A stretch of DNA of 39,340 nucleotides from positions 1-39,340 of the forward strand of contig NIVC01000165.1 of assembly GCA_002269645.1 (NCBI GenBank), in the 5' to 3' direction. Of the stretch, positions 17,401-24,898 are shown one piece after another. The notes below the pieces were generated by a model. It saw only the letters and a program-made list of their open reading frames with translations. It made no database searches and had not been told where the DNA came from. The position numbers and the translations under genes were made by a program. The DNA is from Macrostomum lignano (lineage: Eukaryota). Within the stretch, counting starts at the first letter, position 1. The number at the start of each line of letters is the position of its first letter.

Positions 17401-18656
17401 GCACTGGGACAGCTGGGGCGCCAGCACCGAAGGCATGGAGCTGCTGGAATCCGACGGACCGCTTGAAGTCTATCGGAGCTGTCTAGAGCAAGAGGGTGAG
17501 CTCTGAGTTCGGAGTTTGATGAGGTGAACTGTCAAGAGTGCTAGCGCCTCTGGTGCTGGCGCCTCTGGTGCTGGCGCCTCTGGTGCTGGCGCCTCTGGTG
17601 CTGGCGCCTCTGGTGCTAGCGCCTCTGGTGCTGGCGCCTCTGGTGCTGGCGCCTCTGGTGCTGGCGCCTCTGGTGCTAGCGCCTCTGGTGCTGGCGCCTC
17701 TGGTGCTGGCGCCTCTGGTGCTGGCGCCTCTGGTGCTGGCGCCTCTGGTGCTAGCGCCTCTGGTGCTGGCGCCTCTGGTGCTGGCGCCTCTGGTGCTAGC
17801 GCCTCTGGTGCTGGCGCCTCTGGTGCTGGCGCCTCTGGTGCTGGCGCCTCTGGTGCTGGCGCCTCTGGTGCTGGCGCCTCTGGTGCTGGCGCCTCTGGTG
17901 CTGGCGCCTCTGGTGCTGGCGCCTCTGGTGCTGGCGCCTCTGGTGCTGGCGCCTCTGGTGCTGGCGCCCATGGTGCTAAAGCCCCCTGGTGCTAAAGCAC
18001 AGAGTTACAAAAAGATACACTTAAACACACTTTACCGCATTGAGATGCACACAAGGACACATTTAGATACGCCAAGACACATTGGATGCCACTCTCCCCT
18101 TCCTCGCCCCGAAGGCGCGGCAGTGGACCCAATCCTGGCGAGGCACACAGTCACAGGTGTGTCGGCTCGCGAAGTGGCCGAGATGTTCTGGAACCTGCAG
18201 TACCGCCTGGACTGGGAGCGAACTCTGGACTCGGCCCCGATCGTGCTGGACACCCTGGCCTCGGACACCCTGCTGCTGCACCAGATCTACAAGCGACTGT
18301 GGCCGACAGCCCAGCGCGACTCGGTGTTCTGGTCGCACATTCGGCACGCCGAACAACGGACGATGGTTGTGAACTGCAGCACGGAGGTCGGGGCGCCGCC
18401 GCTGGCTTCGGGCAGGCAGCGGATGCAGCTGAATGTGAGCCTGATCTGCGAGACCGAACTGCCAGAGGGTGGCCGTCTGCCAACAGAGCGAAGTCAGCTG
18501 CGCTGCCGGATGCAGTACTCGGCGAGGGTGCACCCTGGAGGCTGGGCGCCTATGGCTGTGCTAAGACAGGTGGCTAAACGGGAATATCCCAGGTTCATGC
18601 GAAGATTTTCGGCTTACTGCGTAGACCGGGTCAAGCATATGCCGGTGCAGATTTGA
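14401..18656 (+). CDS. CERT1: Ceramide transfer protein CERT (COL4A3BP/STARD11), full length, 5 exons, about 586 aa
   Basis: Exons 14401-14625, 14809-14945, 15234-15621, 17027-17495, 18115-18656 (1761 nt, in frame, GT-AG). PH domain [30 protein letters not shown]...GCRGAVSL; serine-rich motif [14 protein letters not shown]; [16 protein letters not shown]; [12 protein letters not shown]; START domain [14 protein letters not shown]...VHPGGWAP...KREYPRF. Confidence 0.95.
15077..15190. repeat. Short tandem repeat TTTACCTGACAGGTTTAAGGCGTTTACCTAGGTAGATTTCAGGGTG, about 2.5 copies
   Basis: CERT intron 2. Confidence 0.8.
15721..16220. repeat. Two pyrimidine-rich low-complexity arrays (CTCTACTCTACCTTCT; CTCTCCTATCTACCT)
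   Basis: About 15721-15888 and 15988-16220, CERT intron 3. Confidence 0.85.
16601..16966. repeat. (TCTG)n microsatellite, about 91 copies
   Basis: Near-perfect; one TCTA variant. Confidence 0.98.
17538..17978. repeat. 15-bp tandem repeat GTGCTGGCGCCTCTG, about 29 copies
   Basis: CERT intron 4; source of the LVLAP/GASTR ORFs. Confidence 0.96.
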
Positions 18657-18845
18657 GGCAGAGATTGCGCTATTTTCATTTCTTTGATTCTGCTTATTGT
18701 TCCTAGTTGATTCCTTTGACTCGCGGCCACATTAATGCACAGCTTTCATCGATTTTTGGTCTTTTTAATCAAATTTGTTGTTTTTGTTGTATCACGGCTG
18801 AATTTCGAAATAATCTGAATTGGGGTGTTTTGTCGCTTAAGCGAG

Positions 18846-21717: not shown

Positions 21718-24700
21718 ATGGAGAAAGTGCAGAAGCATGGAAGTGAAGCTACCGAGTCAGCTGGTTCCAGTTTTTTTGTGGTGAGTACAAATATGTTTAT
21801 TCCTGAAGATTGGCGACCCTATTCCACTTTAATAACTCGGAGATCCCAGATCGGAGATCCCAGATCGGAGATCCCAGATCGGAGATCCCAGATCGGAGAT
21901 CCCAGATCGGAGATCCCAGATCGGAGATCCCAGATCGGAGATCCCAGATCGGAGATCCCAGATCGGAGATCCCAGATCGGAGATCCCAGATCGGAGATCC
22001 CAGATCGGAGATCCCAGATCGGAGATCCCAGATCGGAGATCCCAGATCGGAGATCCCAGATCGGAGATCCCAGATCAGAGATCCCAGATCGGAGATCCCA
22101 GATCGGAGATCCCAGATCGGAGATCCCAGATCGGAGATCCCAGATCGGAGATCCCAGATCGGAAATCCCAGATCGGAGATCACAAAAGACAGCAGACCCA
22201 TTGAAGAGACACTAAGCATACCTTACTAAAGGATACACAGACAAGAGATCAAAATGAGACAGCAGAACCCACAGAAAAGGCATAGGATACAAACCTCAAT
22301 TTAGGGAATTGACAATCCCAAAATACTCGCACCAGTCCCAGAAAGAGATGCAGCAGCTAGAAGATTCAGTCCGAACTCTCGCTTTCATTTCACGCAGACT
22401 CGCGCAGAAGCCACCAGCCAGAAGCAGCAATCCAAAACAGTGCAGAACAGAAGCACCAAGGAGGAGCCAGGCGACGAGGATCAGTTCTTCGACGCTTTGG
22501 AAGCTCCTTGTAAATATTCGGGCGATGCCAGCGGTGCGTCAGCACCGCCGCCTGCTGTCGAACGTCCGCTGCAGTCTCTTGAACACCCGTTAGCCCAAGA
22601 GATTCAAGCTGTCTGTCGGGCGCACTGGGACAGCTGGGGCGCCAGCACCGACGGCATGGAGCTGCTGGAATCCGACGGACTGCTGCGGGTGTACCGGCAT
22701 CGACTGGCTCAGTCAGGTTCGCGATGGTGTCGATGGTTGCCAACTATTCGGCACATGATCAGACTTTCTAATCGTCAAGCACGTATTCTACTGGCCAATT
22801 TTTTAGCACAAGCCCACACCCCAAAATGAATGTGTCAGCGCACCGAATCAAACCAGGGGTCGTGGCGCGGGGTCGCCATCATAAGCGCGCACTGGCACAA
22901 GCGCGCCTGTGTATTTTATGTCAAAGTCTGGCACAGGCGCGCAGAGACATAAGCGCGCACGTTTTGACTTGCACAAGAGCGCGGTAGAAAGTGCTCAGCA
23001 TTGGCATAGGCGCGCACCATCACAAGACCGCACTGGCATAAGCGCGCAGTCAAAGTTTGGCACAAGCGGGCAATGCAATAAATAAAAGCAGTCAAGTTGC
23101 TCCATCGTCTGTCACAAAGTAGTCGATTGTATCTGTACGAAGGAAATCGAATTAAAATTAAAAATTAAAATTAAAATTAAAGGCCGTGTCCCGGCATGTC
23201 TGGCTGCAAGTCGTGGTCTGGCTGCTGATGATGATCCAGCAATCCATCAGCAATGTGCGACGTCAAAGTGACCAATGCGCAGAAGGTTAGAGGCATAAAA
23301 AGTTCGCGTGGATCGCAGCAGTGACTTTCTTCGTGCGCCGTCTGATGCGCCGACTGTCTTCACTGCAAATGCAGTCGTCACGGAACGAGTCGAGTCTCAG
23401 CACACCATCCTTCTCGACGGCGCGTCCCGGACAGTTCTTGTTAGTGCAGCGATAGCTGACTGTCCCATTTCTAACTTCTATCTTCCCGATAAATGTAGAC
23501 GCCGTGCGTATAGACTATGATGAGCCGATTCTTTTCCCTTCGATTGGCTCCGTTGCGTTTCAAACACTCCAACTGCGACTGAGACTGAGTGCGTCTTATT
23601 TATCTAAGTCGCAGTATCTATCGACAGTGTACATGCTTAGAATTGTGCCAACTGTGCCTCTGTTTACACCCTAACCCACCACCCTTGTGCACTACAGCTT
23701 TGATTAAAATTTTTCTACACTATCAAGTCAGTCGCCAAATAAAGTGCGCGCTTGTGCCTTAGAGAGTAAATAATGCGCTCTTGCGCCAAAGTCTGACAGC
23801 GCGCTTATGCCACAGCGTGTCAAAAGTGCGCGCCTCTGCCAGTGCGCGCTTGTGCCGGTGCGCGCCTCTGCCAGTGCGCGCTTGTGCTGCTGCGCTCTTG
23901 TGCCGGTGCGCGCCTCTGCCAGTGCGCGCCTCTGCTAGTGCGCGCATGTGCCGCTGAGAGAGTCGGGCTAGTCTTCCTCAGGATCAGATTGCATGGGCTG
24001 GCACCAAGATGCACCTTGCCTTTGTGCACAAATTAGGCTATTGTCGGTCTCAAAATTATGCAATACTGGCTATTAAAGAAATATTTTTATACATGTATTT
24101 TGATTTACCTCTCGAATTTAACAAGTTATTGGTAGCACTTACATGTACCGGTTCGTATTAGCGAATAGAATAGAATAGAATAGAATAGAATAGAATAGAA
24201 TAGAATAGAATAGAATAGAATAGAATAGAATAGAATAGAATAGAATAGAATAGAATAGAATAGAATAGAATAGAATAGAATAGAATAGAATAGAATATAA
24301 TATAATAGAATAGAATAGTACATAGTACATCTGTACCTCCACTTAAGATGCCGCACTGGATCCTGTCCTTGCCACTTACACGGTTACCGGGGTGACGGCT
24401 CACGAAGTGGCCGAGATGTTCTGGAATCTGCAGTACCGCCTGGACTGGGAGCGAACTCTGGACTCGGCCCCGATCGTGCTGGACACCCTGGCCTCGGACA
24501 CCCTGCTGCTGCACCAGATCTACAAGCGACTGTGGCCGACAGCTCAGCGCGACTCGGTGTTCTGGTCGCACATTCGGCACGCCGAACAACGGACGATGGT
24601 TGTGAACTGCAGCACGGAGGTCGGGGCGCCGCCGCTGGCTTCGGGCAGGCAGCGGATGCAGCTGAATGTGAGCCTGATCTGCGAGACCGAACTGCCAGAG

Positions 24701-24898
24701 GGTGGCCGTCTGCCAACAGAGCGAAGTCAGCTGCGCTGCCGGATGCAGTACTCGGCGAGGGTGCACCCTGGAGGCTGGGCGCCCAAAGCCATTATCAGGC
24801 AGGTGTCCAGACGCGAGTACCCGAGATTCCTGAGACGCTTTGCTGCATTCTGTGTGGAGCGCGTCAAGCACCAACCGGTCTCTCATTGTGTTCAGTGA
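21718..24898 (+). CDS. CERT paralog with FFAT and START domains only (no PH domain found), 3-exon model, about 310 aa
   Basis: Exons 21718-21780 (ATG...GTG|GTGAGT), 22398-22716 (TTTCACGCAG|; EDQFFDALE; [21 protein letters not shown]) and 24348-24898 (complete START, stop TGA). The phase-1 intron sits at the same position as in the full-length copy. 933 nt, in frame. The first exon is the least certain part, and the donor at 22717 (GTTCGC) is weak. Confidence 0.8.
21838..22180. repeat. 14-bp tandem repeat CGGAGATCCCAGAT, about 24 copies
   Basis: Inside predicted intron 1 of the PH-less CERT paralog. Confidence 0.96.
22875..23952. mobile_element. Foldback-like element: inverted arrays of GGCACAAGCGCGCACT-type motifs around a non-coding core
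   Basis: About 22875-23070 carries GGCACAAGCGCGC/GGCATAAGCGCGC motifs, and about 23740-23952 carries their reverse complements (GCGCGCTTGTGCC/GCGCGCTTATGCC). Exact termini and TSD not found. Confidence 0.5.
24164..24318. repeat. (AATAG)n microsatellite, about 30 copies
   Basis: Just upstream of the paralog START exon acceptor. Confidence 0.97.

Follow-up and report, generated by a model that had tools for sequence, protein, structure and literature searches.

Two tandem CERT paralogues share a 381-bp tract of near identity

Why should two genes whose introns can no longer be aligned carry, inside one exon, 381 bp that differ at only two bases? This question is raised by a tandem pair of genes related to human CERT in Macrostomum lignano. 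We analysed the whole 39,340-bp contig NIVC01000165.1 of the assembly GCA_002269645.1 (Mlig_3_7), hereafter the window, and coordinates are window positions unless another contig is named. Copy A (14401-18656) and copy B (21718-24898) lie in direct tandem orientation, 6.2 kb apart (constant offset 6233), and the tract that they share is very probably a real product of interlocus (non-allelic) gene conversion, as judged from the distribution of differences along and around it. The tract occupies the following positions:

18170..18550, + strand: candidate conversion tract of copy A, in exon 5, equivalent of human CERT 431-564
24403..24783, + strand: candidate conversion tract of copy B, in terminal exon 3 of the paralogue without PH domain

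A first-pass annotation of this DNA had claimed a 381-bp match with two synonymous mismatches, and our alignment reproduced it: 379 of the 381 bases are identical without gaps, and the mismatches are C/T differences at 18194/24427 (AAC/AAT, Asn) and 18311/24544 (GCC/GCT, Ala). The abrupt divergence that it had described on both sides was found as well. In the same register and without indels, the 60 bp upstream have an identity of 0.67 and the 90 bp downstream one of 0.63-0.67, with about 65-69% for the flanks within the exon; the strings quoted as divergent are present from 18551 and 24784, and past the stop codons A/B identity is at background level.

In a GENECONV-type permutation test, in which the 52 mismatches were reshuffled over the 531 aligned coding sites, the longest run with at most two mismatches did not exceed 196 bp in any of 200,000 permutations, compared to 381 bp in the real alignment. 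When third positions alone were considered, 0/200,000 permutations attained the observed run. At third positions, the tract has 2/127 mismatches and the flanks have 32/50 (Fisher p = 5e-20), and the binomial probability of two or fewer at the flank rate is about 1e-52. Synonymous divergence along the exon is far from uniform: NG86 estimates give a synonymous divergence (dS) of 0.03 and a nonsynonymous divergence (dN) of 0.007 in the tract, while the 5' flank has a proportion of synonymous differences (pS) of 0.70 with dN 0.16 and the 3' flank a saturated pS of 0.89 with dN 0.21.

We asked whether selection could account for this drop. The earlier argument was that selection alone would not keep synonymous sites identical. 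The protein is about equally similar to human CERT in the tract (50/126 residues identical, 40%) and in the flanks (7/17 and 15/34, 41-44%); constraint on the amino acids was rejected as the cause on these figures. Selection might also act on the nucleotides themselves, if the synonymous sites of each copy had been frozen independently by RNA structure, by an antisense gene, by extreme codon bias or by a signal for splicing or translation. The high GC content at third codon positions (GC3) of the tract (0.82) would suit such a constraint, as would the long antisense open reading frames (ORFs) that it contains, which are usual in GC-rich coding DNA. Against it, no Rfam family matched anywhere in the window, and RNA folding gave the tract no advantage over shuffled sequence (z = +0.88); both a structured RNA and a member of a known RNA family were rejected on these results. 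The constraint would moreover have to freeze 125/127 third positions right beside saturated ones, at the binomial probability given above, and to do so where the protein is no more conserved than next to it. Finally, 7 of 388 sites do vary among the copies compared below, about what neutral divergence between subgenomes would give, and none is fixed between A and B; sites that are variable and yet unfixed are a signature of exchange, not of constraint. We regard selection at the nucleotide level as hardly credible.

Copy B is an old partial duplicate of a full-length CERT gene

The exons of the two genes are modelled as follows:

14401..14625, + strand: copy A exon 1, start codon and first part of the PH domain (splice model)
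14809..14945, + strand: copy A exon 2, remainder of the PH domain
15234..15621, + strand: copy A exon 3, serine-rich stretch and middle region; an alternative acceptor at 15183 is possible
17027..17495, + strand: copy A exon 4, middle region, FFAT motif (17246-17278) and START N-terminal part
18115..18656, + strand: copy A exon 5, START C-terminal two thirds and stop; the divergent flanks 18115-18162 and 18551-18656 enclose the tract
21718..21780, + strand: copy B exon 1, specific to B, without counterpart in A
22398..22716, + strand: copy B exon 2, FFAT-like DEDQFFDALEA (22473-22505) and START N-terminal part
24348..24898, + strand: copy B exon 3, START C-terminal part and stop codon

The five-exon model of copy A has GT/AG at all junctions and an intact ORF of 586 aa, encoding in order a PH domain, a serine-rich stretch, an FFAT motif and START. 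Its PH domain scores 43 bits with Pfam PH, the best solved match being the PH domain of human CERT (E = 1.4e-31). The window contig has no called gene for copy A; PH+START proteins of 575 and 584 aa are annotated as its equivalents on two further contigs (NIVC01001740.1 and NIVC01000006.1). For copy B, the three-exon splice coordinates are exactly those of the annotated protein P0026 (PAA89094.1), 310 aa long. The terminal exons of both copies encode the C-terminal two thirds of START (Pfam PF01852, E about 1e-17), and for the START domain of both the best solved relative is that of human CERT (E about 5e-42).

Copy A has an N-terminal PH domain of the PI4P-binding CERT type and the serine-rich stretch, FFAT motif (EFFDAVD) and START of human CERT/STARD11 (CERT1, COL4A3BP), to which its START is ~39% identical, and is a full-length CERT orthologue. 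The first-pass annotation had spoken of two CERT copies, a description that suits A, with its PH domain, FFAT and START, better than B. Copy B consists of its private first exon, the FFAT-like motif and START, and is without the PH domain, the middle region and everything else upstream of FFAT; in its motif, position 1 has changed from Glu to Gln (QFFDALE instead of EFFDAxE). Ceramide transfer and VAP binding by the two proteins are predictions from sequence.

Homology between A and B starts just before the FFAT motif (near 22455 in B, 17222 in A), intron 4 of A and the last intron of B coincide in position and phase, and exons are the only sequence that can be aligned between the copies, introns and untranslated regions (UTRs) being unalignable. 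These three features mark copy B as a partial tandem duplicate of copy A, and the saturated synonymous sites of the flanks, together with the unalignable introns and UTRs, point to an old duplication. Both copies are under purifying selection and B is a working gene, considering that dN/dS in the flanks is well below 1, that ORFs are intact in 6/6 copies of the three locus versions described below, and that synonymous to nonsynonymous changes between versions are 4:4 for A and 7:6 for B.

We also noticed a UniRef model, A0A1I8HCG3 (P0028, 686 aa), presumably derived from the older ML2 assembly, that fuses copy A (...VKHMP) to exon 2 of copy B (TRAEATS...), with a junction from the GT at window position 18646, 9 nt before the stop codon of A, to the acceptor at 22398. 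Either A and B are joined in one transcript, through read-through or as a chimera, or the fusion is an artefact of gene modelling on the older assembly.

The homogenised tract recurs in three versions of the locus

Two more collinear versions of the locus were found in the same assembly, on NIVC01001740.1 (243 kb, here L001) and NIVC01000006.1 (1.1 Mb, here L002), with 97-99% identity; each of these and the window contains A, B and a downstream transglutaminase gene. The sequenced DV1 line has three subgenomes (S, L1 and L2) with a single-nucleotide polymorphism (SNP) divergence of ~1.9-2.4% (PMC10733133). Three locus versions are consistent with this published genome structure, and they probably correspond to S, L1 and L2. 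The tract is present only in the two exons of each version. A transposable element or dispersed repeat was considered as its source and rejected on this restriction and on the alignment of A with B in exons only.

Comparison of window positions 11258-31164 with both other versions showed that the window contig is a mosaic of them. It is nearly identical to L001 at 11-17 kb (68 vs 4 informative sites) and at 26-28 kb, and mixed or nearer to L002 across copy B; the 18-kb bin of this three-way sorting of sites was disregarded, as paralogous A and B cross-match there in L001. The mosaic reflects either exchange between subgenomes or a chimeric contig, and it is in line with the reported chimeric share of 36% of the Mlig_3_7 scaffold length, in an assembly also known as redundant (PMC10733133).

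We placed the six terminal exons (A and B from the window, L001 and L002) in one register. In the flanks, A and B differ at 62-63 positions per 163 bp, all fixed or nearly so (about 64 sites counted as fixed across the six sequences), with 0-2 differences within each paralogue. On the contrary, no A/B difference is fixed within the 388 bp of 18163-18550. The seven sites that vary there are each private to one copy or common across paralogues, and the distances are 2-4 between A and B and 0-4 between versions of one paralogue. The 3' limit of the tract is common to the three versions and the 5' limit nearly so, the A/B identity of L001 reaching 5' to 18163. The proposal of interlocus conversion is thus borne out by a dS drop confined to the tract, by its sharp edges and by the absence of fixed differences in three versions. 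Considering that A-B distances in the tract are no larger than those between versions, the last homogenisation probably dates from around the time at which the three versions split, or from later. The event had been called recent, which would be right for this last step and not for the whole history, as flanks only 65% identical and a second, 59-bp island of identity (see below) suggest.

Could the identity have been produced by the assembly itself? Mlig_3_7 was assembled from PacBio reads by Canu and polished by Pilon with Illumina and RNA-seq reads (PMC5730564). In an assembly that is redundant and partly chimeric (PMC10733133), and on a contig that is itself a mosaic, a truly divergent tract in B might have been overwritten by short reads of A, or the two copies mixed in the long-read consensus. 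However, short reads of A would be unable to map on a B that is ~35% divergent, polishing blurs only copies that are already near-identical, and it cannot make a 381-bp stretch of identity whose edges within the exon are sharp to the base. These limits recur on three separately assembled contigs of 39 kb, 243 kb and 1.1 Mb, private variants specific to single copies persist within the tract, and the copies sit 6.2 kb apart among unique, unalignable introns, a span that PacBio reads can reach. Variants of the L001 type (DWEPT, RRFSGY) recur in the ML2-derived model P0028, which goes back to the same PacBio data, and the 59-bp island, which has one fixed difference, is of the same kind. An assembly or polishing artefact is very unlikely on this evidence, which comes from assembled contigs and one gene model.

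Copy B of L001 (14410-14967 on NIVC01001740.1) carries two changes of its own, an Arg to Pro substitution beside the equivalent of human CERT Glu446 (DWEPT; about window position 24453) and a Glu to Lys substitution in the acidic tract of the FFAT-like motif (DKDQFF; about 22479). As the same variants occur in P0028, they are probably real.

A second island of identity in the preceding exon

The exons upstream of the terminal ones also share a short stretch of near identity, which the first-pass annotation had not listed:

17401..17459, + strand: short identity island of copy A, in exon 4, START N-terminal part
22622..22680, + strand: short identity island of copy B, in exon 2

Here 58/59 positions are identical, in surroundings where A and B are ~50% identical. 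The sole mismatch, A/C at 17431, is a fixed Glu/Asp change, and the island is common to all three locus versions. Inside the island 1/20 third positions mismatch, outside it 19/26 (p = 3e-6); the run was attained by 0/200,000 permutations.

A single tract running across the intron, as would be left by a complementary DNA (cDNA) template, was considered and ruled out, as A and B diverge at the exon ends on either side of the intron (17460-17495 and 18115-18162). These divergent ends indicate that the two islands are separate and not one copy of a spliced template.

Proposed repeated conversion and its probable direction

We asked how conversion could have left such islands in an old duplicate. 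A break in the terminal exon of one copy would have been repaired off the paralogue, by synthesis-dependent strand annealing or by double-strand-break repair with heteroduplex correction, so that ~380 bp were overwritten. Conversion is classically seen in this setting, with paralogues closely spaced in direct tandem orientation and tracts of a few hundred bp. Homologous repair nevertheless needs a near-identical stretch and is very inefficient at ~65% identity. Since the ~65% identical flanks would be unable to support homologous pairing, we infer that the island never diverged far and was re-homogenised repeatedly after the duplication, while divergence advanced inwards from its borders. The 59-bp island may then be another, smaller segment subject to conversion, or what is left of such a segment, and the last events would fall around, or after, the split of the three subgenome versions. 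Repeated conversion is somewhat favoured over a single event in our judgement, and would mean long-term concerted evolution of the two copies.

Three sites and one branch of the comparison bear on the number of events. Position 18407 (GCT/GCC, a synonymous T/C change outside CpG) is variable in both A and B, a single site whose placement polishing may affect. Copy B of L001 has 2 differences to the A copies of L001 and L002 and 4 to the other B copies, on few sites, and the paralogues are not reciprocally monophyletic within the tract by distances resting on those few sites. At 18169 and 18194 (24402 and 24427 in B), the B copies of the window and L002 have a B-specific state and the B copy of L001 has the state of A; these are the only sites that separate window-B and L002-B from all A copies, and both fall in the first 32 bp (chance about 0.007-0.014). 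Together, 18407, the nearness of L001-B to A and the two edge sites suggest differing 5' end points, i.e. more than one event, and a transfer from A to B.

The same data can be read as a single patch, in which one event copied ~388 bp of A into a fully diverged B shortly before the subgenome split, by homeologous repair or microhomology-mediated template switching, present differences being later mutations or polishing noise. The common 3' limit and nearly common 5' limit, the similar A-B distances in all three versions, and the fact that the signs of multiple events come down to three sites that polishing could have disturbed would all agree with one event. It would however require homologous repair at an identity where, as is well established, this works very poorly; the 59-bp island is easier to understand as the remainder of a once larger, shrinking homogenised region; and both the clustering of the two edge sites (p about 0.01) and the one shared non-CpG polymorphism speak against it. 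A single patch seems to us unlikely, though a serious alternative.

Base composition bears on the direction. The tract has a GC3 of 0.82-0.84 and the 59-bp island one of 0.85-0.90, compared to 0.55-0.67 in the unconverted coding sequence of B, and 0.83 in exon 4 of A. This pattern fits A as donor, GC-biased repair, or both. As expected from GC-biased gene conversion, GC3 is higher in both islands (0.82-0.90) than in adjacent unconverted coding sequence of the same exons (0.55-0.67). In contrast to that expectation, exon 4 of A reaches its value outside any island, so that the composition of the donor, with transfer from A to B, explains the same numbers. Taken with the site patterns, conversion from A to B is the direction towards which we lean.

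Tandem arrays lie close upstream of both converted exons, and one could speculate that they are the source of the initiating breaks:

17538..17977, strand not assigned: 15-bp minisatellite, 29 copies, in intron 4 of A, ~140 bp upstream of the converted exon
24163..24318, strand not assigned: (GAATA)31 microsatellite, in intron 2 of B, 30 bp upstream of the converted exon

Several points weigh against the conversion history proposed here. Six near-identical copies of the tract would cross-map during polishing, which may make single SNP calls unreliable, and 18407 as well as the edge sites 18169 and 18194 are among the calls that may have been disturbed. Repetition and direction depend on these three sites and on base composition, and both are provisional. 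All three versions were taken from a single assembly of one inbred line and are therefore not independent samples, and the older ML2 assembly behind P0028 was built from the same PacBio data. The window contig, moreover, is the L001/L002 mosaic described above, in an assembly with a reported 36% of chimeric scaffold length (PMC10733133). Our outgroup protein search returned no other Macrostomum sequence, and homologues from outside M. lignano were at most 46% identical (nearest 44-46%).

Comparison with known cases of gene conversion

Interlocus conversion has long been known in tandem gene pairs, such as human gamma-globin HBG1/HBG2 and the exons of the opsins OPN1LW/OPN1MW. The CERT pair resembles them in its direct tandem arrangement a few kb apart, in a sharp tract of a few hundred bp with homogenised synonymous sites and divergent flanks, in raised GC3 and in paralogues that are not reciprocally monophyletic within the tract. 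On the other hand, the CERT pair is very old (saturated dS, unalignable introns), its tract is an isolated island and not a patch in otherwise similar genes, and the M. lignano locus has three subgenome versions as internal replicates.

The shrinking-island models of Walsh 1987 and of Teshima and Innan 2004 reportedly predict that conversion persists only above a threshold of identity for pairing. Divergence invading from the edges would then leave isolated islands in old duplicates, of which the 381 bp and 59 bp seen here could be examples; the model serves here as a possible explanation. A literature search found no description of gene conversion in M. lignano or in its CERT genes. What we describe is thus an ordinary known process in a gene pair and a species for which no description was found, and the locus is distinctive only in its cleanness, in the age of the surrounding duplicate and in its three internal replicates within a neopolyploid genome.

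The tract covers the ligand contacts but only part of the START domain

We also looked at what the tract encodes. In human CERT, the ceramide head group is held by a network of R442, E446, Q467, Y482, N504 and Y553, W473 and W562 are membrane and gate residues, and the alpha4 helix, which binds the membrane, forms with the omega4 loop one wall of the cavity (PMC13525633, PMC11228987). Alignment of the tract to human CERT 431-564 showed that Arg442, Glu446, Gln467, Asn504, Tyr553, Trp473 and Trp562 are conserved in both copies and all lie within it, and that the residues named by the first-pass annotation map as it had stated (PMC13525633, PMC11228987). Thus 5/6 residues of the head-group network are kept; Tyr482 is Phe in both copies (codons 18325-18327 and 24558-24560), and seven residues are deleted, relative to human CERT, just before the strand of Asn504.

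The proposal that the tract covers the whole ceramide pocket could be kept only in part. The named residues are inside, but the tract ends exactly at the equivalent of Pro564, leaving alpha4 in the divergent 3' flank, where 10/32 residues differ between A and B, and the N-terminal elements of START are also outside. Likewise, the idea that conversion keeps the pocket identical stands as far as conversion is concerned, with no sign of selection for it, the tract being as conserved (40%) as its flanks (41-44%).

Homogenisation might still be adaptive, if selection had kept converted haplotypes so that the paralogue without PH domain retained a canonical CERT ligand pocket. In its favour, five network residues and both gate tryptophans fall within the tract, ORFs are intact in the three subgenomes and both copies are under purifying selection. 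Yet an identical protein does not need identical synonymous sites, and conversion alone explains the pattern; alpha4, which walls the cavity and binds the membrane, is outside the tract with its 10 differences (PMC11228987); conservation across phyla is no higher in the tract than in the flanks; and one version of B has the Arg to Pro change beside the Glu446 equivalent. A neutral, self-reinforcing loop would be enough, in which identity permits conversion and conversion restores identity. That B is a working gene does not mean that the conversion is adaptive, and we consider adaptive homogenisation improbable.

A related and equally doubtful reading is that the island is more than a side effect of repair, namely a long-lived, domain-restricted unit of concerted evolution. 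It would keep the ligand core of a PH-less paralogue tethered to the endoplasmic reticulum (ER) the same as in canonical CERT, while the membrane-binding alpha4 and the targeting regions are free to diverge. If it were true, both proteins would act on the same ceramide species, each at its own membranes, or the long protein would be regulated by the short one, and three subgenomes converting in parallel would be a natural replicate experiment after genome duplication.

Other features of the window

On the minus strand, 2850-6530 is an uninterrupted ORF of 1226 aa with protease, reverse transcriptase, RNase H and integrase domains, apparently the intact Pol of a Ty3/gypsy-type long terminal repeat (LTR) retrotransposon. 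The introns and spacers of the window contain about 25 minisatellite arrays, (TGTC)92 at 16601-16967 among them, and one 21-bp minisatellite occurs in opposite orientations at 20858-21139 and 38070-38726, 17 kb apart and ~93% complementary. Downstream of B, the 722-aa transglutaminase (Transglut_N, core and C domains; 26179-32338, minus strand) keeps its position in the three versions.

Implications

The finding does not overturn current understanding. For annotators it carries a warning, as short reads, RNA-seq quantification and polishing cannot separate the two genes, or the six copies, over the tract. The locus would be convenient for measuring how long conversion tracts are, in which direction they are transferred, how strongly GC is favoured and how often non-allelic conversion occurs, with a dated genome duplication as the time reference. 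For the biology of CERT in M. lignano, an animal in which transgenesis is established, the finding points to a putatively expressed paralogue with FFAT-like motif and START, without a PH domain, that has the canonical ligand-contact residues.

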